Shown here piece after piece: positions 1 through 64,000 of a stretch of DNA of 64,000 nt; position 1 is the stretch's first letter, and each line of letters begins with the position of its first letter. Under the pieces are notes generated by a model. That model saw nothing but the letters and a program-made list of their open reading frames with translations. It did not search any database and was not told the origin of the DNA. This DNA comes from Ministeria vibrans ATCC 50519. Taxonomy: Eukaryota > Protista > Filasterea. Position numbers and translations under genes: made by a program. Location of the stretch: NCBI GenBank assembly GCA_943704425.1, contig CALSCP010000774.1, forward strand, positions 105,208 to 169,207, written 5' to 3'.

Positions 1-83
1 CTGCAACTCTCTCGCTTTTATCTTGAAGAAAAAGGTACCATCAGAGAGAGAGAGAGAGAGAAAGGAGGGAGAAAGAAACAAAG

Positions 84-136
<53 letters not shown>

Positions 137-152
137 GGAGAAAGAAACAAAG

Positions 153-192
<40 letters not shown>

Positions 193-949
193 GGGAGAAA
201 GAAACAAAGTGATAGGGAGAGAGACAGAGAAACAAAGTGATAGAGCGAGAGGGAAAAGCACCGGAGAGAAGCGAAGTGGAGAAAATAACAGAGTGGAGAA
301 GGGGGATGGTGCGTGAGAGGGAGTAGAAAATGGAAAGAACACAGAGACCCTCACGCTTTGTCCGGTTTAGACGTGTCGATTGCACGGTTACACGGATCAG
401 ATGCACGGCGAGCCCTTCTCATTTTAGGGGTCATGTTTGCGCACAGCTTTGCGGAAGGAGTGAGCATTGGTACGGTTGAAGGAAACACACACATGATCTA
501 TATATCTGTATTTATATTTTTTATATCTGTATTTTTTTTCTCTCTCGTCCGCTTACGAAATTATGTCCCGTTTAGGCGTTTCGTTTGCTCACAGCGATCG
601 ACTTGCGAGCGTGATTACAATGGGCCTGGCACTGCACAACATTCCCGAGGGTCTTGCGATCAGTCTGGTGCTGGTGCGGCGTGGTGTGAGTCCCCTGCAC
701 TGTGCTCTCTGGTCCATTGCGTCGTCGCTGCCCCAGCCCATCATGGCTATTCCCGCCCTGCTCTCCGTCCAGCTCTTTTCTGAGATTCTCCCTTGGGGGC
801 TGGGCTTTGCATGTGGCGCCATGCTGGCCGTGTCCCTCGACGAACTTATTCCTGAGGCGCGCACCGACCTGCGCACCCGCGACGTTTTCATCATAACGAC
901 CCTTTGCATGCTCCTTGTGCTCGGTGCACATTTCTTTCTTTTTGCGTAG
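1..949 (+). CDS. ZIP (SLC39/ZupT-GufA) zinc/metal transporter, 3' part (5' end outside window)
   Basis: Spliced frame: exon ending at 34 (AAG|gtacc), exon ~345-469 (…ARRALLILGVMFAHSFAEGVSIG), intron 470-575, exon 576-949 with LALHNIPEGLAISL, SSLPQPIMAIP and GFACGAMLAVSLDELIPEA. These are the ZIP TM4/TM5/TM7 signatures. Stop TAG at 947-949. Confidence 0.9.
43..245 (+). repeat. (GA)n microsatellite with embedded GAAACAAAGTGATAG dispersed motif (4 copies)
   Basis: Motif at 75, 144, 201 and 229 in a ZIP intron. The same motif recurs in many other introns (see findings). Confidence 0.9.
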
Positions 950-964
950 CACGTCTCACCTTCT

Positions 965-1268
965 CCCACTGTACCTTACTATCCCAATACATAAGGAACC
1001 CTGCTCAATACGCTCTTGTCTTTTGTGTGATGGATCCAATGTAGTGTGCTTTATCGCCAATGGTACCCACTGTACCTTACTATCCCAATACATAAGGAAC
1101 CCTGCTCAATACGCTCTTGTCTTTTGTGTGATGGATCCAATGTAGTGTGCTTTATCGCCAATGGTACCCACTGTACCTTACTATCCCAATACATAAGGAA
1201 CCCTGCTCAATACGCTCTTGTCTTTTGTGTGATGGATCCAATGTAGTGTGCTTTATCGCCAATGGTAC
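965..1268. repeat. Tandem repeat, 3 identical copies of a 101-bp unit
   Basis: Unit CCCACTGTACCTTACTATCCCAATACATAAGG…TTTATCGCCAATGGTA starts at 965, 1066 and 1167. It lies between the convergent 3' ends of the ZIP and ARMC1 genes. Confidence 0.95.
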
Positions 1269-1436
1269 AGTTGCTCTCTCTCTTTCTCTGTCTCTCTCGC
1301 TCTTTGTCGATCTATCTACCCCTCTCTCTCTGTTTGTCGATCTATCTACCTCTGTCTGTCTCTCTCTCTCTGTTTTTCTCCGTCTCTGTCTCTCTCTTTC
1401 TCTCCGTCTCTCTCTTTCTCTCTCGTCTGTTTGGGT

Positions 1437-2642
1437 TCACCAATAGAGTGTCTTTGAAATGTACGAGCCAATTGAGCCGAACCAGCCGCCCTCATCCTGG
1501 GACGCTGCCTTGGTGCGTGCGAGGGCGTGCTTACTGACGGTCGGCCCATCGTGCGCCTCCTCCTCGGGCAGATACCCTCCACTCGACGTCCCCTCCTGTC
1601 CCTCCGTCTCCTTCTCTTTGCTTCCGCTGCCTTTGCTGCTTCCAATCTTACTGCCGAGCACATCCACCAGAATTTCTTCCCCCTTGTCGTTCTTGATCAC
1701 CTGTAATGGGTGTTTGGTTTGAGTTAAAATAAGAATTGTGTTCGTCTCTCATACGTGTTTGGGGACAAAAGTGCTCGATGCACTCGAAATGGCTCGGCAG
1801 ATGCGGTCCACAAGCAGATCTGTACGACAACGGACAAACACGCGCGCCGGTGCTCGATGCGTATCAAAAGTGAACCTGGAAAAAAAGAGTTGCTGATTAA
1901 TTGTGTGTGTGTGTGTGTGAGTGTGTGTTTACGAGATGACTCCTTTGAGGCGCAGCAGACTCTCTTCGACCTTGCGCTTGTTGGCCTTGCCGCTGAGCCC
2001 TTCAACCGAGAGGGTTACTGTGCGCGCACGCTTGGACCCTGCGCCCAAGTAGAAGCTGGGAGAGCCCGGCTCGACTCGCTCGTTGGACTCCTTGTGGCTG
2101 TTTTCGTTGGCGCGCATCTGCTGCTGGCGCTTTGAACGACGTCGCTGCTGCTTCGCCTCCTCCAGGATGTCTGTGATCTTTGATGCAAGTGTCATGGCCG
2201 CCTCGCTCGAGGGCACCTCGCGGCTGGTGAGCGCTGCGAGACTCGGCATCAATCCCATTTCCTTTGCCATGACGACACGGTTTTCCTCGCAACTCGCAAG
2301 ATATTCGAGCGCTTCGAGCGCTGTCTCAATCACGCTCGCATTGCTGTTGTCCAGAAACAGCACAAGACCTGGCAAGCATCCCTAATCACCAGCAGAGGAG
2401 AGAAAGAAAGAAAGAGAGAAAGAGAGAAAGAGAGAGAGAGTAAGAAACAAAAACATTTTTTTTTCGTTTGTTTGCCCATTGCTTATATCGCCAATGCGAG
2501 AGGGCCAATCGCCCCACTTCAAGCTGGATGCCATCCCACGTGCTGTGTTAAAGCACATTACCTTGTCGTGGACGATCGTAACGCGGTTGGCGGGGTCTGC
2601 TGCGAGCTGGCGCAAATTTTGGACAATTTGAAGTGTTTCCAT
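1437..2642 (-). CDS. ARMC1: Armadillo repeat-containing protein 1 (ARM + HMA-like domain), mitochondria-associated
   Basis: Four exons (2642-2562, 2381-1933, 1875-1755, 1700-1437) with phase-consistent GT-AG introns give [38 protein letters not shown]…FYLGAGSKRARTVTLSVEGL…LLRLKGVISFTF…YLPEEE…GGWFGSIGSYISKTLYW. This matches human ARMC1 motifs as recalled (LRDLAADPLNR, QGCLPGLILFMD, KRAKTVVL, KGVISFTF, C-terminal SRSFYW). Confidence 0.93.
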
Positions 2643-3026
2643 TGTGAAAATAGAGAAGCTGCAGCATTGGTGCGTCACGGAATCACATGAANNNNNNNNN
2701 NGGGGGGGGGGGGGGGGAGTGGGGGATGCGACGCAATCTGGTGGAAAGGTAGACAGTACTGTTACGAAAGACGAGGGTGATGAAAGTCGAAATAAATTGA
2801 AAGTGGACTTTTAAAACTTTTGAGTTGTTTTTTTTTTTTTTTTTCACTTTTGATCGTTTTGAAATCTTTAATCTTTTTCTTTCGCGTTCGCTTTTCTTTT
2901 GAACACTTGTTGTATCATCAAACGCACACACCCTCCCATCCACACACACACACACGCACACCATCTGGTATAATCGCAACCACGTCGACAAAGACTCCCC
3001 CGTTTTCGACTCGCAACAGCAACGAG

Positions 3027-4616
3027 ATGAGCAGCAGCAAACTCAGCAAAGGTCTGACGTCGTCGCAGTACCGTCGTCGTGCCATCCCCAGCCTCCCTGT
3101 GCGGGTCCTGCGCGCCGCACATGAAATCATCTACACATTGATGGTACGACCATACGTGCAGCCGTGAACAGAGAACAAGAAAGAAAGAGAGAGAGAGAGA
3201 GAGTGAGAGACAAAGAGATGGAGAGAAACATCTTTTTTATTTTTCAATGTTTGCGCGTGTTGAAATATCACACTGGCAGACGCTTTTGCACGACCAAGAC
3301 CAGGCCAAGTACTCACTGTATGTCTTTTAAATGCCATCGTTGCAGCCGTCGGTGTATGCGCCGTCGTATCGACGAACGCGCGCGTCGAGAAATCTCGTCA
3401 GACGTCTTGCCAAACTTTTCCCTATCAACGGTGTCATCGGAGTTCGCTACAACGTCCCACGGTCTCTTCTCGAGGCACTCGACGACGATGATGATTTGGG
3501 TGTCTTTGAAAGTCGCCGGCAGCCAGGTATGCGCTGGAAATGGCATTTCTGTTTTTTTTTTTTTTTGCACTATTATATTGCTCACAATATATTATTTGTC
3601 CTATATTTTTTGTAGGTCGTGGTGTTGTTGCTCGAATTGGGAGTCACAGCTATGAGGAAAGATCCAAACCAACAGGAAGGAAAGTGTGGAGAACGCTTCC
3701 GGGAGTGCATCAGGATGAGCACAACGAGTCGGAAAACGACGACGACGACGACGACGACGAAGGTAGAGTGTATCGCGCGTGTGTGGCGTACAGCGACTCC
3801 GATGACAGTGACGGCGGCGAGTACGACTCTGAAGAAGATGATGAGAATGATGACGATGCCGAGTACGACTCGTACGACGAAGACGACGAGGCGGAGCCGT
3901 CGGTCGCTGCCACCCCCGCCAAGACTGGCGCTGGCTCTAAGAAAATCTCTGCACTCGAAATGGAACTGGCTAAATTGCGCGACCAAATTGCAGTCATTGT
4001 GTCAACGCAACAAGAACAGCAACAAATTCAGCAACAAATGCAGCAAGGACCACCACCACCGCCAGCGGCATTTGCGCCATCACCGTGCGGTGGGGACGCC
4101 GACGCCGACGCCAACGCCATGGCCGGAGGTCCGCCACCGCCACCGCCGCCCCCACCCTCCATGGAGTCGCTTATGCCCAAAGAGAGCAATGTATGGGAGA
4201 CCATCCGAGCCAATGTTGCCAAGGGCACTGGCCGCGCCAAGCTTGAAGATGCCAAGAAGCAAAGCGGAATGCCTAACATGAAGGATGTAAGAACATGGAA
4301 GTAATGTCGACGGTTCAGCCAAGTGTCTGACGCATTGTTTGCTCTCTAGATTTTGAAGGGCATGGGTAGTGTGAAGTTGCGCTCCGTCGAGCGGTCACCA
4401 GGAGGGACACCCATCCGACGCAAGCCCGCAGCGGCCGAAAACCCTAGCGCCGCAGACATCATTGCCAATGCGCTCAAGCGCAAGTTTGCCCAGCAACGCA
4501 TGGCGCGCGGCAGTCGTGAAAATTCTCGCGCAAACACTCCATCACGTAGCAGTGCTTCCAAATCCTTTATCGACGAGCCCTCCGACGAAAACGCCTCTGC
4601 ACCCCTCAATGCGTAA
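3027..4616 (+). CDS. MTFR1: Mitochondrial fission regulator (MTFR1/MTFR2/MTFR1L, FAM54) family protein
   Basis: Exons 3027-3143, 3346-3526, 3616-4286, 4350-4616 (phase-consistent). Motifs SRNLVRRLAK, KKISALEMELAKLRDQIAVIV, poly-Pro, MPNMKDILKGMGSVKLRSVERS and AADIIANALKRKFA correspond to MTFR1 ([63 protein letters not shown]). The start codon is inferred. Confidence 0.88.
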
Positions 4617-4839
4617 AGGGAACTTCAATCAATCAATCAATACAATTATTTTTCACGGATGATACTATCATTATTCATGTAATTCTTTAATGATCATTAT
4701 TCATTCCCCAACCCTCCGACCACAATATAATCAATCGATGCAGTTATTTTCACCGATAATACTATCATTGTTAATATAATAAGTCAAATAATCTGTTTGT
4801 CCTCTGACAAGTGACAACAATTTATTAAACAATATTTTT

Positions 4840-6463
4840 ATGTCTATGTATCGATTGCTTGTGCTCTTTGTCGGCTACCTGGCTTTTGCACAAGCCTACA
4901 TTGTCCCATTTGAGCTACACGATGAGATCATGGGTAGGATTCTCACTCACTCGAAAAACCACTCTGAAACGATCGTTGTCAGGATGCGCTCGCTTACGGG
5001 GCGGCGATGCGCGCATTGCCTATGGCCGAGTACTGGGACAGTACGAAGAGAGCCTTGATGGGACCGACGAGGACGTGATCGAGGCAGTGCGGGTCTCGCT
5101 GGAGTGGATTCACGATCAGACGTGTCCGGTCGACGATCAGCTGCCGCGCGTTGTGCGCGCCTGCAAGTTATTACTACGCTCCACTCGGAACCACGACACC
5201 CACGAGGTGTACGAGTGGAACGACCGCAAAGGAAGTGGCGCGGTCGTCCGTCATCGTCGCGCGGTCGTCCTCGGAAAAACTTTGTACATCACCTTTGCAG
5301 TCGACTCGCCAGTCCACACGGTGTACCACCGCGTCGTGGTGTCGCAGGGCCGCGCTCGCGATTGGAACCTGTTTCAGCATGTTTCATGTGTCCATTGTGA
5401 AGAGACAGACGGTGCAGTGGGCGTCAGCTTGCTCACCACAGGCGCCTGTCGTGTGCCACCATCCTCCTATGTCCATCCTCTGTCTTCTTCTTCTTCTTCT
5501 GTGCCGCCTCTCTTTCCGCTTCCCTCACCCCGAGCAGCGGCCGCGTCACACTCGCTTCGTGTGCTCACGTACAACATTTGGAATTTCAACGAGTGGCCAG
5601 TCTACGACCATCGTCTGACTCTGCTGGGCCAAATACTGCGCGAAGCTGACGCCGACATTGTCGCCTTCCAAGAGATGCGATACGACTATGCACGCGCACG
5701 ACACGGACGCAACCAAGCAGAGCATATGGCACGTCTATTGCCCGGCTACCAATTTGTCTTTCAGCCGGCCATGTCGTACACCGAGCGCACGTTTGGTCGT
5801 GTCGAGGAAGGCACGGCCATCTTCAGTCGGCTGCCAATCATCGAGCACGACTACGTGCTGCTCTCACGCGACCATGCTAACCATCACGACGACCACCAGC
5901 GCACCTGTCTTCGTGTTGCCGTGGCCGTGCCCTCCTTGGGCCCCGTGCACGTGTACGTGTCGCACTTTGCGCACGTCGAAGCTGCGCAGCGTCGTGCCGT
6001 TCTCGAAATCGATGCATTTATACGGGCCACTCACAATGGCGCTCCCGCCATATTCGTTGGTGACCTCAACGCCACGCCCGACGCACCCGCTATGGAGTTT
6101 TTGCGCGGCATCCGCGACTTTGACGGCATTCACTCGCCCCTGCGCGACGCCTGGCTGCAGCTGCACCCCGAGCCCCGCGACGGCAGCCCGGCCAACTACG
6201 ACGATGGCGACCCGGAGTCCGCGGACGACGACGCCCCGCGCGACCCAGGCCTCACGTTTGCCACCATCGACCGACACCTGCGCAAACGCATAGATTTTGT
6301 CTACTACGACGACACACTCATTGAGGCGCGGCGCATTGCAACGGTGGGCGATGATGCCGACGCCAACGCACCCGTACACGCCAGCGATCACCGCGGCGTT
6401 CTCGTTGACTTTGTCCGGCGCACACCTCCTACTCCCTCCCCCGTACTACTAATGGATGGATGA
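4840..6463 (+). CDS. Endonuclease/exonuclease/phosphatase (EEP, DNase I-like) family protein with predicted signal peptide
   Basis: Exon 4840-4933 (hydrophobic leader MSMYRLLVLFVGYLAFAQA), 49-nt intron, exon 4983-6463. EEP motifs LRVLTYNIWN, ADIVAFQE, GTAIFSRLP, IFVGDLNATP, RDAW, RIDFVY and ASDHRGV are all present. Confidence 0.88.
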
Positions 6464-7030: not shown

Positions 7031-9156
7031 TAGTGATGAGAGACTCAAACTGTAAGTGTGAGCAGGCCGCATACGGATTCAAGGACAAGCAGACAGAGCC
7101 AGAGAGCAATTCCCGGACCAGATTCAAATCCAAAAAACTCCAGCACTTCATCGCCATTCTCAAAGCAGTTACTCTACGACAGAAAAAAGAGGCGATGAGT
7201 AAGTAGTTGGAAACTTGAAGTGTGATGTGTGCGGAGTATGTTCTCACCTCGGTGGGTGAGCAGCCGGTGAGAGTTAGGCCAGTGAATTCGTTGAGAGTTA
7301 GCACACGGTAGGCATACGCATTCCAGTTGATGTAGTAAAACCACACAAAGTAGTCGGGAATGTGCTTGAGATTAATTAGCAATCCGCTCAACAGCACCTA
7401 AACCAGCACAACACCGTGAGTGTAACATTTCTCTCTCACTTTGTTTCGTTCCTTCTCTCTCTGTTTCAGCCTCTCTCCCTATCACTTCGTTTCTTTCTCC
7501 TCCCCCTTATCACTTTGTTTTCTTTCTCCCTCCCTCTTCTCTCTCTCTTTCTCTCACTCTCTGTTTGTGCAGTTCACCTGTAGCACAATGAGCACTGCGC
7601 CAAGAGCCCCTGCAATCTCACGGCGCGACACCAGCGCACCAATCAAAAGACCCGCACAGGCGCCCCTATCACAAAAGAACAAGACATAGAGAGAACGACA
7701 CATGAGAGATCATATAAACACGCAGAGTACAGGAGTAAGGGATAACGTACGTGTAGGAGACGGAGAGGAGGGTAAAAGTGAAGATGAGCCACTTGGTGAA
7801 CACTGCCTGGAGACCCACCATCCAATAGACAACGCTGGAGAGCACAATGGTCGGGAGGATCTGTACAGGAAGATTCACCAGCACACGCGTCAGAAAGTAC
7901 GGAAACACCTGGTACGTGCCGGCTGCACGCTCGCGTCGATACACCGCTAGATCAACACTATAAAAATAAAGAGACGAAGAAGTGAGTAGAGAGATAGGGA
8001 ATGGGGCGCGTAGAAAGAATAATTTGGCATACCTGAAGACACGCATTGCGGCAAAGACACTGGTGACACCCTCGTTAATGGTAAGCGAGAAGAGCAGTCC
8101 CTGACGGTCTCGCACGCCCGCCTGGTTGTTCTCCACCTGCAGGAAAACAAGGCCAATGAAGATGCCAAGTGTCGTGGCGCGAATGGTCTCCGACACAATC
8201 ATCGGGAGGTTGCGCCAGTAGTTCATGCGATGGAAGAGGAGCAGGTAGCGCATCTGCTGTAGAAGCGTTAAAGGACGAGCCGCTTCAAGCACAGAGCGAT
8301 GGAGCGGCACGCGCGACCCTTGGCGCGACAGCGTGTCCATGTGAATGCTGTCATCGGCCGTCTCATTGTACCTCCCATCCTCCTCTTCTCCAATCGGGTC
8401 GGCTTCGTGCAGCGTGTGCACCGCGTCCACCAGCTCCCGGCGCTCAGGTGACGACTGGAAATGCTTCAACAGACCCGCCACCCGCTTGACGCTCTCAGTG
8501 GACTGCTCGTCCGAGCGATGGTCAAACGACGACACGTCCAAAAAGAAGTCGGCGGGATTCGCGTCAATAGGGCACTGGTAGCCCAGACGCCCCATGTAGT
8601 CGACACAAGCGTCCGCCCGTCCTACACACCCACAGACATGCGCAGTCTAGAATCAGAACTCCTGCATTTTTCGTGTCTTTTTTGTTAATATCACTTGTGC
8701 GTTGTACCAAAGTAGACCATATCTCCATCGGCAAGGAGCAAGAGGCGATCAAACAGGTGAAAGACCTTGCTGCGAGGCTGATGAATTGTGGTCAGCACAA
8801 CACGATTGTTGCTGGCGAGTGCGCGCAGCGTCTCCATCACGTTGGCCGCCGTGAACGAGTCCAGGCCGCTTGTAGGCTCATCAAGCAAAAGCACGTCTGG
8901 GTCACCAATGAGTTCCACCGCAATCGACACACGCTTCTTTTGACCGCCCGAAATGCCGCGCCGTAAGTCGTTCCCAATGCGAGTGTCTGCACAGTCGACC
9001 AGCCCAAGTTCGGCAATCAGTGCGTCGACACGCGCCAGCTTTGTCTCTTCCGAGACACTTGATGGCAGTCGCATGCGCGCGGCAAAGGTCAGCGTCTCGC
9101 GAACCGTCAGAAAGGCCGCATGCGTGTCGTCCTACAGAAAGAAAGAAAGAAAGAAA

Positions 9157-9251
<95 letters not shown>

Positions 9252-9753
9252 TGTGTGTGTGTGTGTGTGATAGAGAGAGAGTGATATATAGAGAGAGACA
9301 AAGTGATAGAGAGAGAAACAAAAGTGACGCACAAAATGTGTCAGGGGCGTCAAGTCAGAGTGGGGGTTCTCTTTCACCTGCATCACATAGCCGCAGCGTC
9401 GCTTGAACTGCTTGGCAGTCAGAATGGTGTTGTTGACCATCACCTCCCCGGTGGTGCGGCCGTTACTCACGCGTCCCGCCAGGATATTCATCAGACTCGT
9501 CTAACCATCGCACATCACAACAGTTGCAATGCCATCAAAATATGATTCATAGGACGACATTTCGAACCTTTCCCGCACCCGACGCGCCCATGATCGCAAG
9601 CACCTGGCCACTATCGACGTAGCCGTACATGGTGTTGAGGATGCGCTTCGTCTCGGCCTTCTTCTGGTCGATTTCATACGCGATGTCGCGCCAGAGGAAT
9701 CGCGCCGCCCCTTGCGACTGCCGCGACATGGCGCTCATTTCGCGCTCCCCCAT
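6588..9753 (-). CDS. ABCG (White-type) half-transporter A
   Basis: Multi-exon gene with Walker A GASGAGK/TS, Q-loop GYVMQ, signature ISGGQKKRVS, Walker B LLLDEPTSGLDS and H-loop TIHQPR. It continues with NPADFFLD, an ABC2 membrane domain (RDRQGLLF, YRRERAAG, NEFTGL) and an ~85-aa C-terminal tail ending at 6588. Confidence 0.93.
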
Positions 9754-10023
9754 GTTTGATCTGACAGCGGGGCAATATCCACTCACGCAACTAAACGAAA
9801 TGAATCTCGCTGCAGAGTCTTATTTGCTATCTGAAATCTTATCTCATCCAGTTTGTATTGTAAGATCGCCCACGTGAAAGATAAGAAGTTCAAAACACAA
9901 TCTGAATTTCCGAAATCGGATTTTGCATTGACTCACATCAAATCAGCCTTTCACGCCTGCCTTTTCGGTGCACTGGTTTAGAGTGTGACTGCTTGAACCG
10001 CGTATAGAGTGTTGACAAAAACC
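9754..10023. promoter_or_regulatory. Probable bidirectional promoter between the two ABCG genes
   Basis: 270 bp between divergent ATGs. Contains inverted GATA boxes (TCTTATCT 9837-9844, AGATAAGA 9879-9886), E-box CACGTG 9871-9876 and the inverted repeat TCCGA-AA-TCGGA 9909-9920. Confidence 0.55.
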
Positions 10024-13336
<3,313 letters not shown>

Positions 13337-13554: not shown

Positions 13555-34292
<20,738 letters not shown>

Positions 34293-46679: not shown

Positions 46680-48914
46680 ATGGAGCCTATTCAACCAAGC
46701 GAAAGTACGAAAGCGCCCGAGAAGCAAGAGGCGTCGCAAGCGTCGCAACCATCCGCCGCGTTTGCGACGCCACCGCAAGTCGCGCTCCCTGGTGGCGGCA
46801 ATGCCGCCAGTGGAGCCGACCCCAATGCTATGAATGCCTTCATGAGTGCGTTCACCTCGCAAATGGCTCAAAATCCGTTATTGTCAGCCACAAATCCCCT
46901 CATGAGCTCGATGATGGCAAATCCTATGATGGCCATGATGATGATGGCAGCCTTCTCGCAAAACGCCGCTGTGAAAACGGCATCGGCTAGCGCCGACCCG
47001 TCTGGAAGTGCCCCCGATCCACAAAGTCATGGTACGCATGACGCCACTGCACATTTGCAGCAGCAGGCGCCAATGATGCCGCAAATGATGGGCATGGGCA
47101 TGCCACAGATGCAATGGCCCATGCCCGGCATGTGGGGTATGGGAAACATGGGCGGGATGGGTGCGGCGCCTTTTTTTTCTTCGTTTAACCCATATGCGCC
47201 CGCCGCCATGTCCGCCGCAATGGGCGGCTATCCGCCCATGCCCATGGCCGACATGATGGACATGGGTGGCGTCGCTGGAAACCCCGCAGCGATGGCAGCA
47301 GCAGCAGCATCGGCGGCGGCATCTGCTGCGGATGGTCTGACGTCGGTAGAAAATAATTCGGCCTTGGCGGAGAATGCAAACACTGATGACGAGATGAATT
47401 CGCACCATCGACAACCGCACACGATGCAGCAGCTGCAGCATCGAACCTCGACATCACCAACGGACCACAGCGCGCACCATGTCACCGTGGCAAAGCGCAG
47501 CGGAGGCCGCGGCCGACCCATGGGGCGGAAAAACGGCGCTTCCCCCGCGTTATCATCCTCTCACTCCCGCTTACCCGCAAGCGACGACAACGATCACCAT
47601 CACCCAATGTCGCTCGATGACGAGGCAACCACACCCGTGTCGCAGGCGGGACACGAGTCGTCCCCTTCGCGATTCAGCGTTAGCGGTCGCGAGATCAAGC
47701 GGCCCGCCTCGGCTGGCGACTACCTCGACTCCGAGCGTGCCGTGTCGCTTTTGCCCGAGTCGTCTGCCCGTGCCACCCCGTACACTCGCAAAGTGCCTGC
47801 AGCAGCGCGTCGCAAGAGCACCGACAACGATCCCGAAATCCGCAACCTTGCTGGCGCTGCTGCCATTGGCGGACACCACTTTGTGTCGGCGCGCAAGACC
47901 CAAGAACGCCGTCGTCCTCGCATGCGTGTTTCCGTCTCCTGCTTGCCCTGTCGCTCGTCGCACCGCGCCTGCAATGGCTCGCGTCCTTGTAACCGCTGCA
48001 CTCGCCTTGAGATTGCCGACATGTGCGTCAACGCCATCCAGCGTCGCCGTGGACCCGCTCCCAAGAAGCCCGAGGACCAGGCGGCGGCCGCCGAGCTTTT
48101 TGAGAAGCAACAGCGTCAGCTCAACTCTTTTTCCATGACCGTACGCCCCTATGCGCTTCATGCGGGCACTCAGCTCGACGCCAATGGCCAGGCCATCAGT
48201 GGCAGCGGTGGACCCATCCGCCACCGCCACGTGCACCGCCAGCGCGCGTCTGCCAGCACTGTGGCCGCAGCTGGCTCGAGCGTCGTCAGTCGCAAGGGTC
48301 ACACGCGCGCTGCGGCGCTCGCCAACCCGTTTATCAACAAGGGTGCCGACGACACCGATTCGGATTTGGACGAGGAAGAAATGCGCCAGCGGATCGACGA
48401 GATGGGCTCTATGGACGGACTGGAGGAGTTGGACGACGAGGAAGATGAAGACGAAGAAGAGGAGGAAGACGAGGAGGAGAAGGGAAAGGTGATGGAGGAG
48501 TTTGCGCGAGCGAGCGCGACAGAAGCGCAGTCGGAGGACAACGGGGAGGTGGAGGAGACACGCACCGAGTCGTTCCGCCATGGCGATGACGCTGATGTGG
48601 ATGAGGATGATGAAGGAAAACAGTTGGACATGACAGCCCCTCACACCACCACCGCAACAACTACAATGTTGGCCGCTAAGGCTAGTGACGGCGATGATGA
48701 GAGCAACGACATCGTAGTTGATTCCGGCTCTGACGAAAGCACAACCCACAACAACAACAACAACGCACAGCCCACCGACAAGCACCCGCCGCGTCTCTCT
48801 CGCCAACAACAACAGCACGCGGTCTCTCCCACTCTCCCAAAGGCCCACTCGCCTCCTCCCGCCCCCAAAAACCGTCGTGGTCGTCCTCCGAATCGCCCTC
48901 GCGCCAATGTTTAA
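46680..48914 (+). CDS. Zn(II)2Cys6 (GAL4-type) transcription factor with Met/Gly-rich N-terminus, acidic region and AT-hook-like motifs
   Basis: Single-exon 744-aa ORF containing CLPCRSSHRACNGSRPCNRCTRLEIADMC (C-x2-C-x6-C-x5-C-x2-C-x8-C) at ~47940-48024. GRGRP and RRGRPP motifs are also present. Confidence 0.85.
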   Translation: MEPIQPSESTKAPEKQEASQASQPSAAFATPPQVALPGGGNAASGADPNAMNAFMSAFTSQMAQNPLLSATNPLMSSMMANPMMAMMMMAAFSQNAAVKTASASADPSGSAPDPQSHGTHDATAHLQQQAPMMPQMMGMGMPQMQWPMPGMWGMGNMGGMGAAPFFSSFNPYAPAAMSAAMGGYPPMPMADMMDMGGVAGNPAAMAAAAASAAASAADGLTSVENNSALAENANTDDEMNSHHRQPHTMQQLQHRTSTSPTDHSAHHVTVAKRSGGRGRPMGRKNGASPALSSSHSRLPASDDNDHHHPMSLDDEATTPVSQAGHESSPSRFSVSGREIKRPASAGDYLDSERAVSLLPESSARATPYTRKVPAAARRKSTDNDPEIRNLAGAAAIGGHHFVSARKTQERRRPRMRVSVSCLPCRSSHRACNGSRPCNRCTRLEIADMCVNAIQRRRGPAPKKPEDQAAAAELFEKQQRQLNSFSMTVRPYALHAGTQLDANGQAISGSGGPIRHRHVHRQRASASTVAAAGSSVVSRKGHTRAAALANPFINKGADDTDSDLDEEEMRQRIDEMGSMDGLEELDDEEDEDEEEEEDEEEKGKVMEEFARASATEAQSEDNGEVEETRTESFRHGDDADVDEDDEGKQLDMTAPHTTTATTTMLAAKASDGDDESNDIVVDSGSDESTTHNNNNNAQPTDKHPPRLSRQQQQHAVSPTLPKAHSPPPAPKNRRGRPPNRPRANV

Positions 48915-50331: not shown

Positions 50332-51846
50332 TCAAACATTATTGAGAAGGAGCACCGCAATGAAACCCACAAAAAAGGCGAGACTGATAAAGGGGGTGTC
50401 AACATCGTCTTCGGCGTGAGCTTCGGGAAGAAGCTCCTCGGCAATGAGATAGAGTAGGGCGGCCGTGCCAAAGGCAATGAGAGCGGAGAAAACGGGGGAG
50501 GAAGGGGGAACGGAGGAGAGGGCAGCAGATCCAATCAGAGCGCCGACAAACATAAGGAGGGGCAGAAGGGAGGTGATGATAATGCGAGTGGGGAGGGGCA
50601 GGCGTGAAGAGGACGAGAGGGCCGCCGAGAGCGACATGCCCAGAAAGGTCATTTCAATGGTGAGGGCGATGGTCATGAGGATGCCCGCTTGGAGGGAGGT
50701 GGCGCTCATGAGGCCGATGAGGAGGCCGTCCTGGAGGATGTCGATGGCAACGGCGAGCAGAAAGGCCCACGGGAAGTGCTTTGTATGCGTGGTGGGTGAG
50801 GAAGTCGTTGTGTGAGGAGCACTGGAAGAATGACTGGAGGGAAGCGCGGTGGAGGAAACGGGGAGGAGCGGAGCGTCGTCGTCGTTGTGGTTGTTGTTGG
50901 TGTTGTCGTCGTCGTCGTTGAGCGAGATCCGCTCCGCATTGTTATTGCTGTTGTTAATGTTGTTGTGGAGGTGGGCACTGACGACGAGAGAGGTGCGAAT
51001 GGGCGACTTGGTGATGCTGAGAATGGAGGAGGAGCGGTTGAAGAGCGACGGGTTGGGCGGTGCTCGAGAGGCGGCGACCGACATTGACATGCGATGCGCC
51101 ATTTGCGGCGGCGGTGGAGAAGGCAGGGAGTGGATGACTTCACTCGCAGGCAGGGTATGCGATGCCTCCTCTTCTTCCTTTTTGTTGTCTTGTTCGGCTC
51201 TGCTCTCGCACAGTCCTGTGACCACTTTGATTCCCAGCATGAGCACCGTCCCCGCAAAGAACCCACTCAAGGTCGCCCACCACTGGACGTGGGGAGCCGC
51301 GAGCAAGGGAACCAACTCGACGGCCACAGACGCGGTCAGAATGCCTGCCGACAGATGGTTGAAGACGCAGCGGAGGACGGCACCGGGCACGTGCCAGGCA
51401 GCGAGCGCCGCGCCTGAGATCATGAAGAGAGCGGTGATGGCAACGAAGATGGCGGCCTGACCAAACTGCTTGGCAACATCTGCCGCTCCCGTCACTAGCA
51501 CCTGTAGCATGTTGCTATGCTGCTGCTCCAGGGCATCGATTGAGGCGCACGAGACGCTTGACGCGCCGTTGTGGAGGAGAGACAGTTGCAAATCAACATG
51601 CCCACTGCCATTGGCGGGATAGAGCGCCAGACGAGGGCTGACGGTGCACACGGTGGCGTCGCTGCATAGACAAACAACCTTGCCAGTCGCACTGGCATTG
51701 CTGTGCGTCACCAAGAGCGAGACGGACACATTTTGACCCGACAATCCCGTCAGAAAGTCCGTCGAAAATCTCAGGTCGCAATCCGCAACCGAGGCAAACG
51801 CAAGCATCGCTACCACCAAAGCAATGCACGAGTATCTCACACTCAT
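50332..51846 (-). CDS. ZIP-family metal transporter, variant (bacterial-like) type, with signal peptide and N-terminal extracellular domain
   Basis: Intronless 504-aa ORF with NHLSAGILTASVAVELVP, a long low-complexity loop, AVAIDILQDGLLIG, ALTIEMTFLG and FGTAALLYLIAEELLPEAH. The hydrophobic pattern fits the 3+5 TM ZIP topology. Confidence 0.82.
   Translation of the reverse strand: MSVRYSCIALVVAMLAFASVADCDLRFSTDFLTGLSGQNVSVSLLVTHSNASATGKVVCLCSDATVCTVSPRLALYPANGSGHVDLQLSLLHNGASSVSCASIDALEQQHSNMLQVLVTGAADVAKQFGQAAIFVAITALFMISGAALAAWHVPGAVLRCVFNHLSAGILTASVAVELVPLLAAPHVQWWATLSGFFAGTVLMLGIKVVTGLCESRAEQDNKKEEEEASHTLPASEVIHSLPSPPPPQMAHRMSMSVAASRAPPNPSLFNRSSSILSITKSPIRTSLVVSAHLHNNINNSNNNAERISLNDDDDNTNNNHNDDDAPLLPVSSTALPSSHSSSAPHTTTSSPTTHTKHFPWAFLLAVAIDILQDGLLIGLMSATSLQAGILMTIALTIEMTFLGMSLSAALSSSSRLPLPTRIIITSLLPLLMFVGALIGSAALSSVPPSSPVFSALIAFGTAALLYLIAEELLPEAHAEDDVDTPFISLAFFVGFIAVLLLNNV

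Positions 51847-58590: not shown

Positions 58591-64000
<5,410 letters not shown>

Follow-up and report, generated by a model that had tools for sequence, protein, structure and literature searches.

A head-to-head ARMC1-MTFR gene pair in a probable holozoan protist, and its conservation in Capsaspora and animals

In human cells, the helical domain of ARMC1 binds two conserved helices of the MTFR proteins through aspartates D27, D37 and D49, and the D37R substitution in ARMC1 abolishes co-purification of MTFR, MIRO and TMEM11; the MTFRs are degraded when ARMC1 is missing, one MTFR assembles with one MIRO at the outer mitochondrial membrane, and the authors name ARMC1 a dedicated MTFR biogenesis factor (PMC11980836, Sci Adv 2025). 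In that work the HMA-like domain of human ARMC1 is termed HMAL, a conserved C-terminal domain of ARMC1 mediates mitochondrial localisation, and a motif of human MTFR1L, [LF]AD[IV], fits the EF1 pocket of MIRO. Gene neighbourhood is not mentioned there (the terms synteny, adjacency and chromosome have zero occurrences). Here we examine a divergent pair of ARMC1 and MTFR-family genes at positions 1437 to 4616 of a 64,000-nucleotide (nt) stretch of contig CALSCP010000774.1, which we refer to at its full length as the window. The pair was proposed in an earlier annotation made from the letters of the window (the sequence-only reading), which also noted that ARMC1 is reported to act with MTFR proteins and MIRO; the published work bears this out, as MTFR is bound and stabilised by ARMC1 and joined with MIRO through it. 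We consider it probable that the two genes form an orthologous divergent pair, with starts approximately 340-385 nt apart, that was inherited from an ancestor at least as old as the split between Capsaspora and animals and has been kept for matched dosage.

A second point of comparison is the gene pair HSPE1-HSPD1. As described by Irimia et al. (2012, PMC3514665), these are unrelated genes arranged head to head across a short spacer from Capsaspora to vertebrates; their products form one mitochondrial complex, and a bidirectional promoter is the expected rationale for the arrangement.

To survey the ARMC1-MTFR arrangement, ARMC1 proteins of non-human genomes were looked up and 10 kb on each side of the corresponding genes were read. 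We found that in seven of the ten genomes examined, this window among them, the gene that lies upstream of ARMC1 and is transcribed away from it belongs to the MTFR family. The neighbour yields a match to the family PF05308 in the window (above the cut-off, and 384 nt from ARMC1), in Capsaspora owczarzaki (L001, KE346360.1; 517 nt), in the cnidarian Nematostella (L006; 348 nt) and in the teleost Cynoglossus (L021; 1207 nt, with a PDE gene beyond), and a weak one in the sponge Amphimedon (L007; 320 nt). For the placozoan Trichoplax (L004/5; 1274 nt) and the echinoderm Asterias (L008; 2197 nt) it is a gene of 360 and 387 amino acids (aa), respectively, that carries both the N-terminal and the C-terminal MTFR block. 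The four compact genomes have spacers of 320-517 nt, whereas those of the remaining three measure 1.2-2.2 kb. The outer neighbours differ in most cases (Arfaptin, CSPP1, PDE, ArfGap, a proteasome subunit, WD40, ZIP and Exo_endo_phos genes), so that the ARMC1-MTFR pair stands out as the conserved core. Since seven genomes, each with thousands of genes, have the same two genes side by side in one orientation, the role of chance is negligible and inheritance is indicated; and because Capsaspora has the same pair, the pre-metazoan age of the linkage is independent of the window. The sequence-only reading had suspected a very ancient linkage, and Capsaspora, sponge, cnidarian, placozoan, echinoderm and teleost now agree with it. 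Convergent re-association of the two genes was rejected as implausible, given seven lineages with identical orientation.

Several outer neighbours recur: a PDE gene lies beyond MTFR in both Trichoplax and Cynoglossus, an ArfGap gene lies beyond ARMC1 in both Trichoplax and Nematostella, and a gene for a 199-aa proteasome subunit lies near the pair in Capsaspora and Trichoplax. We take human ARMC1 and MTFR1 to be adjacent and divergent on 8q13, presumably with PDE7A beyond MTFR. A cattle paper places ARMC1, MTFR1 and PDE7A in one BTA14 interval, and the order PDE-MTFR-ARMC1 of the teleost locus likewise favours this view of the human genes. One bird contig ends 4 kb upstream of ARMC1 and lies outside the count of seven in ten.

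Short GT-AG introns mark the initial 6 kb of the window as eukaryotic, and the exons were searched one by one, each as a separate query. The ARMC1 gene runs on the minus strand from an ATG at 2642 to a stop codon that ends at 1437, and comprises four exons separated by canonical GT-AG introns (915 nt, or 304 codons plus stop). Exon 1 (2562..2642, start codon 2642-2640, donor GTAATG), recognised from its open reading frame (ORF) and by tblastn, encodes 27 aa and ends in phase 0. Exon 2 (1933..2381; 149 codons plus 2 nt) encodes the armadillo helical domain, a basic linker and the start of the HMA-like domain, the remainder of which is encoded by exon 3 (1755..1875; 121 nt, being 1 nt plus 40 codons, with acceptor CCAG and donor GTATGA). 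Exon 4 (1437..1700; 87 aa plus stop) encodes a YLPEEE linker and the C-terminal tail GGWFGSIGSYISKTLYW. The position, strand and both ends of the gene had been given correctly in the sequence-only reading; its model was one exon short, as it passed over exon 3.

A phmmer search of 1.8 billion representatives with exon 2 yielded 103 matches. The best full-length matches are proteins of 270-320 aa whose alignment starts at about residue 28, which fits a first exon of 27 residues. All named matches that were looked up are ARMC1 (birds, lamprey, sea urchins, the choanoflagellate Salpingoeca urceolata and the ichthyosporean Sphaerothecum), and a second ARMC1 search added Capsaspora, S. rosetta, Chromosphaera, Amoebidium, sponges, cnidarians and Trichoplax; long multi-ARM proteins appear among the exon 2 matches only at E > 1e-10. 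The first 12 residues of exon 2 carry the motif GCLPGL(V/I)LFLD(N/H), which is invariant in the family alignment. Scores against the Pfam models are low, at 19.7 bits for Arm (just below the cut-off of 20.6) and 13.3 bits for HMA (under its cut-off). When compared with the PDB, the profile of the ARMC1 family matched chains with ARM repeats at E = 1e-24 and, at E = 3e-7, HMA domains that bind copper, with profile positions 145-208 corresponding to the HMA domains of copper ATPases and CopZ; there is no solved structure of either ARMC1 or MTFR. The HMA-like domain of the window protein, TVTLSVEGLSGKAN...KGVIS|FTFD..., extends across exons 2 and 3 and is without the metal-binding cysteines of the CxxC type. 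The codon split between these exons restores ...KGVIS|FTFD..., which is the family consensus, and the translation of exon 3, which starts FTFDTHRAPARVFVRCR, agrees with the consensus SFTFD...R..VR.R and is 58% identical to Capsaspora over 31 aa (tblastn).

The two ends of the protein are also those of the family. The tail in exon 4 agrees with the consensus YLPE[DE]... GW......SKxLYW and matches the C-termini of ARMC1 in Capsaspora, Nematostella, Trichoplax, Asterias, Cynoglossus and lamprey (tblastn). At the other end, residues 1-24 of the 27 encoded by exon 1 align with the first ARMC1 codons of Nematostella, Amphimedon, Trichoplax, S. rosetta, Capsaspora and Asterias (tblastn), and because these N-termini all align from residue 1, the start codon is placed at 2642. 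The phase-0 intron after residue 27 has a counterpart of identical position in Nematostella, Amphimedon, Trichoplax, S. rosetta and Asterias; the ARMC1 gene of Capsaspora is intronless, and so is without it. Aspartates D16 and D26 (exon 1) and D38 are spaced by 10 and 12 residues, and D38 occupies an invariant column. All five ARMC1 features tested (helical domain, HMA-like domain, C-terminal tail, aspartates and best matches) thus appear in the predicted protein. Matches of exon 2 to named ARMC1 proteins, the invariant motif, the HMA-like domain and the YW tail together establish the identity that the sequence-only reading had assigned.

The closest relative of the window ARMC1 is a fragment in NCBI on a 792-bp contig (P0002), with an ORF that reads through an extra intron, from a very fragmented assembly; its source is probably a related, equally unannotated protist. 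A scan of metagenomes with the ARMC1 alignment returned only transcript-like contigs of 1-2 kb, which carry no information on synteny.

The MTFR-family gene lies on the plus strand, with an ATG at 3027 and a stop codon ending at 4616, and also has four exons (1236 nt, or 411 codons plus stop). Exon 1 (3027..3143, donor GTACGA), recognised from its ORF, encodes 39 aa with a hydrophobic helix; a short first exon of this kind opens the MTFR genes of other species too, a likeness that is qualitative. Exon 2 (3346..3526; 60 codons plus 1 nt) encodes the N-terminal family motif, SRNLVRRLAKLFP...VRYNV. Exon 3 (3616..4286; 2 nt plus 223 codons) encodes an acidic low-complexity region, a coiled coil, poly-Q, poly-P and a basic stretch, and exon 4 (4350..4616; 88 aa plus stop) the C-terminal block VKLRSVERSPGGTPIRRKP...AADIIANALKRKFA. 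The plus strand and the start at 3027, which had been proposed from the letters, are supported by the ORF and by this four-exon model.

Exon 3 alone yields 67.7 bits against PF05308 (Mito_fiss_reg; cut-off 26.3, E = 2.4e-18), and by tblastn it matches within the ARMC1-neighbour genes of all six other genomes that have the pair. The N-terminal motif (R/K)S(I/V/L)(V/I)RxIGxRLP...HFQV is carried by the gene next to ARMC1 in each of Capsaspora, Nematostella, Amphimedon, Trichoplax and Asterias, and the version in the window is the most divergent when compared with these five species. Exon 4 of the window aligns with six species over the C-terminal block VKLRxVxRSPGGTP...DPAxIIAxALKKKF, and its tblastn matches are to Nematostella (E = 1e-12), Asterias (1e-10), Trichoplax (4e-8), Cynoglossus (3e-8), Capsaspora (4e-6) and Amphimedon (1e-5). 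The Pfam score and the two terminal blocks confirm the assignment to the MTFR family made in the sequence-only reading. A word-index search with the exon 3 region gave no matches, and MTFR relatives were reached only by way of ARMC1 neighbourhoods. Two of the genes reached in this way, those of Trichoplax (360 aa; L004 5415-8726, minus strand) and Asterias (387 aa; L008 2168-7803, minus strand), have no Pfam family on record; judged by their possession of both MTFR blocks, they are unannotated MTFR orthologues. The N-terminus of the window MTFR is arginine-rich, which fits charge complementarity to the ARMC1 aspartates. Among the genes scanned, the motif [LF]AD[IV] occurs only in the teleost MTFR (SFADVLW), and it looks like a vertebrate feature rather than one that defines the family; as far as the predicted proteins allow, the window pair shows every ARMC1 and MTFR family feature tested bar this vertebrate-type MIRO-pocket motif.

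The two genes share a 5' intergenic region at 2643..3026 that contains G16, T17 and CA-rich tracts and is a putative bidirectional promoter. As assembled it measures 384 nt from ATG to ATG, in agreement with the roughly 385 bp between divergent starts given in the sequence-only reading, and it includes a gap of ten N at 2692..2701 that adjoins G16 at 2702-2717. The gap lies 50 nt upstream of the ARMC1 ATG, in the promoter or 5' leader, and therefore no reading frame crosses it. That reading had cautioned that the gap might be a false join, so that two unrelated contigs would have been placed side by side and the adjacency would be unreal; a gap exactly between the two genes, beside a G16 tract typical of read failure, is what such a scaffolding artefact would look like. 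Two short metagenome scaffolds in ENA, from samples other than this one, also contain the exon 2 ORF. An 837-bp ENA metagenome scaffold without N, L011, from a sample other than that of the window, corresponds to window 2798..2710 (100% identity), then 1 nt, then window 2661..1915 (99.87%). It thus bridges 2692-2701, with 89 nt from the MTFR side and 747 nt from the ARMC1 side contiguous in the window's order and orientation, and therefore both adjacency and orientation are real.

At the gap, the sequences of the window and L011 are 48 nt apart in length, a point that may be held in favour of an artefact: L011 is without window 2662-2709 (30 nt, the ten N and eight G), and at L011:80-95 it passes from C8 directly to ...ACAGCTTCTC, where the window has G16, the ten N and 30 more bases. 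This difference reflects a polymorphic indel, or else one of the two sequences is locally mis-assembled at the homopolymer, and the spacer is accordingly either 336 or approximately 384 nt long. The window has five gaps (10, 8, 97, 7 and 4 N), of which at least three, including the one considered here, adjoin a homopolymer or microsatellite; unequal lengths and repeats at the edges are expected for size-estimated gaps inside a scaffold. It is also not credible that a false join would reproduce the arrangement of six other genomes. The false-join explanation was rejected on the continuity of L011, and we regard it as having next to no chance of being correct.

The source of the window is probably a non-animal protist of holozoan grade, to judge from its genes, and it also occurs in two metagenomes of environmental or host origin. 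An EML5/6-like protein with tandem beta-propeller pairs and HELP motifs is encoded at 59005-63141 (plus strand), and in a quick tree of this family the window falls outside an animal clade with 100% support, beside one choanoflagellate. A Zn2Cys6 domain (PF00172, Zn_clus) is found at 47940-48026 (plus strand) within an ORF at 46680-48914, with 26.2 bits against a cut-off of 21. The sequence-only reading had described a genome with hisC and a Zn2Cys6 factor, and from these an apparently non-animal source; the Zn2Cys6 domain and the non-animal placement hold, and hisC was not found among the ORFs scanned with Pfam or among the remaining listed ORFs of the window. Were the window to come instead from a fast-evolving or contaminating animal, it would be no non-animal data point, and the pre-metazoan age of the pair would then rest on Capsaspora. 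The EML tree needs to be read cautiously in this respect, as the branch is long (1.51) and could mislead the placement, so that the grouping with one choanoflagellate may be long-branch attraction; best identities of the EML ORF are 45-50% to animals and 47% to Chromosphaera, equal on both sides and none above 50%, and neither the ARMC1 tree nor hisC assists. We nonetheless think an animal source very improbable, since the window falls outside an animal clade that is itself well supported, carries the Zn_clus domain above the Pfam cut-off, is gene-dense and intron-poor with intron-free ORFs of 1,200-2,200 codons, and has no close relative among annotated animal proteomes. The Zn_clus family is not known from animals.

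Why the pair should have been retained may be suggested by the biochemistry. If ARMC1 is a stabiliser and MTFR an unstable client needing matched amounts, a bidirectional promoter common to both genes would hold their products in proportion, and the pair would be retained while almost all surrounding gene order changed. The window proteins appear suited to this mechanism because they keep three aspartates spaced as published, an HMA-like domain devoid of metal-binding cysteines, the C-terminal tail as membrane receptor and arginine-rich N-terminal MTFR helices. In this organism a shared promoter, co-expression and ARMC1-MTFR contact are thus plausible, and selection for co-expression would best explain the retention of the pair.

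Several observations weigh against this reading. The pair is not found together everywhere: the 10 kb to either side of ARMC1 contain no MTFR in the choanoflagellate Salpingoeca rosetta (which has in its place a gene of 722 aa that matches EF-hand models faintly), in the fungus Paraphysoderma or in the lamprey (only poly-Pro noise), so that the survey called for in the sequence-only reading returned linkage in Capsaspora and five animals and none within this distance in these three. As three genomes have the two genes unlinked or at a distance of more than 10 kb, the linkage is dispensable. No convincing k-mer is common to the seven spacers, the shared words being A/T-rich and barely above a simple shuffle. 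The residue-by-residue correspondence of D16, D26 and D38 to human D27, D37 and D49 is a presumed one, and the ARMC1 tree is a polytomy except for its sister fragment P0002 (48% identity over exon 2). The motif [LF]AD[IV] is absent from the window MTFR, even with a relaxed pattern, and from the MTFR genes of Capsaspora, sponge, cnidarian, placozoan and starfish, and MTFR-MIRO contact may therefore be a later addition or be made differently in these lineages. Some of these points would be equally expected if the two genes were ancestral neighbours kept only because short spacers offer few breakpoints, with no role for co-regulation or dosage: the linkage has been lost or loosened in S. rosetta, Paraphysoderma and the lamprey while ARMC1 itself was kept, the spacers share no detectable element, and those of Trichoplax, Asterias and the teleost reach 1.2-2.2 kb. 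Yet the genes outside the pair vary in nearly every genome and the pair with its 5'-5' orientation does not, the two products form an obligate stabilising complex (PMC11980836), and conserved 5'-5' pairs are enriched and co-expressed in such situations (PMC3514665). Neutral retention is thus unlikely, and we favour inheritance of the pair with retention for matched dosage.

A more far-reaching reading is possible, although we hold it tentatively and place it somewhat short of probable: ARMC1 and MTFR would form an obligate stabiliser-client module, its bidirectional promoter under selection since before filastereans, the protist lineage of the window and animals diverged, and ARMC1 itself would date from the opisthokont ancestor. 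The last part follows from a fungal gene. The second ARMC1 search returned a weak match (E = 8.6e-19) to an ARMC1-like protein of the blastoclad Paraphysoderma, and because a blastoclad fungus has such a gene, the ARMC1 family is older than Holozoa and may be traceable to the opisthokont ancestor. The gene in question, of Paraphysoderma sedebokerense (L003, JAHLJZ010000096.1, 10001-11587), encodes 338 aa with a tail ending ...SKWW.

Head-to-head order from unicellular holozoans to fish is independent evolutionary support for the ARMC1-MTFR partnership reported in 2025, and it dates the module to before animals. Conserved pairing suggests that matched expression matters, which fits the degradation of MTFR when ARMC1 is missing, and conserved 5'-5' pairs may more generally flag unrecognised protein partnerships. 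Human cells are complicated by three MTFR and two MIRO paralogues; Capsaspora or the protist represented here could offer tractable single-copy systems. If the stabiliser-client module is real, gene order alone could have predicted the biochemistry of 2025, and a unicellular holozoan with one copy of each gene would be a model, free of paralogues, in which to study the control of mitochondrial distribution. Both ARMC1 and MTFR are among the genes that a honey-bee study found common to honey bee and vertebrates; by the reported design of that study, this would mean that Drosophila and C. elegans have neither.

Other features of the window are noted here. A GA-rich tandem array with a unit of 57-69 bp occupies 43-258 at its start. 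Two ZIP zinc-transporter genes (PF02535) lie at 563-949 (plus strand) and 50332-51846 (minus strand); the former converges on ARMC1, and its start seems to lie before an intron at about 480-560. Between its end and the 3' end of ARMC1 lies a tandem repeat of a 101-bp unit (965-1268; 3.0 copies, 100% identity), either a minisatellite or an assembly artefact, followed by a CT-rich microsatellite at 1274-1428. No Rfam family was found in window 1-6000. Head-to-head ABC transporter genes (ABC_tran and ABC2_membrane) are located at 7669-9500 (minus strand) and 10016-12807 (plus strand), with the gap of 8 N at 10624-10631 in a CT repeat at this pair. From 13555 to 34198 (minus strand) there are very large intron-poor ORFs whose products contain PA14 domains and arrays of EGF and teneurin-type EGF repeats, and a repeat of the Dictyostelium type occurs in one of them; the 97-N gap at 16997-17093 interrupts this run. 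Sec6 is also encoded in the window.

No paper on the ARMC1-MTFR arrangement was found in literature on ARMC1 with microsynteny, bidirectional promoters or gene order, and the pair is not named in the main text of PMC3514665; it may already be among the 595 pairs or in other published microsynteny lists, unremarked. Compared with the human and vertebrate complex of ARMC1, MIRO and MTFR, with or without TMEM11 (PMC11980836), the window has the same two families, with similar ARMC1 domains and aspartate spacing and an MTFR that is alike in its basic N-terminal helices, coiled coil, poly-Pro and C-terminal block. It differs in having a single MTFR gene beside ARMC1, whereas vertebrates have three MTFR paralogues, in a long acidic low-complexity insert in MTFR exon 3, and in an MTFR without the MIRO-pocket motif of the vertebrate system. 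The Capsaspora locus is the nearest equivalent, being the same head-to-head pair in another unicellular holozoan, with an intronless ARMC1 where that of the window has three introns, and with Arfaptin and proteasome subunit genes at its flanks in place of Exo_endo_phos and ZIP. As in HSPE1-HSPD1, the two genes are unrelated and their products belong to one mitochondrial complex; HSPE1-HSPD1 reaches fungi (PMC3514665), while the ARMC1-MTFR pair was not seen in the one fungus examined. With adjacency in distant lineages, divergent orientation and a short spacer, ARMC1-MTFR has the structure of a conserved ancestral 5'-5' microsyntenic pair, and is a good example of a well-known phenomenon rather than a new principle or a new kind of system.

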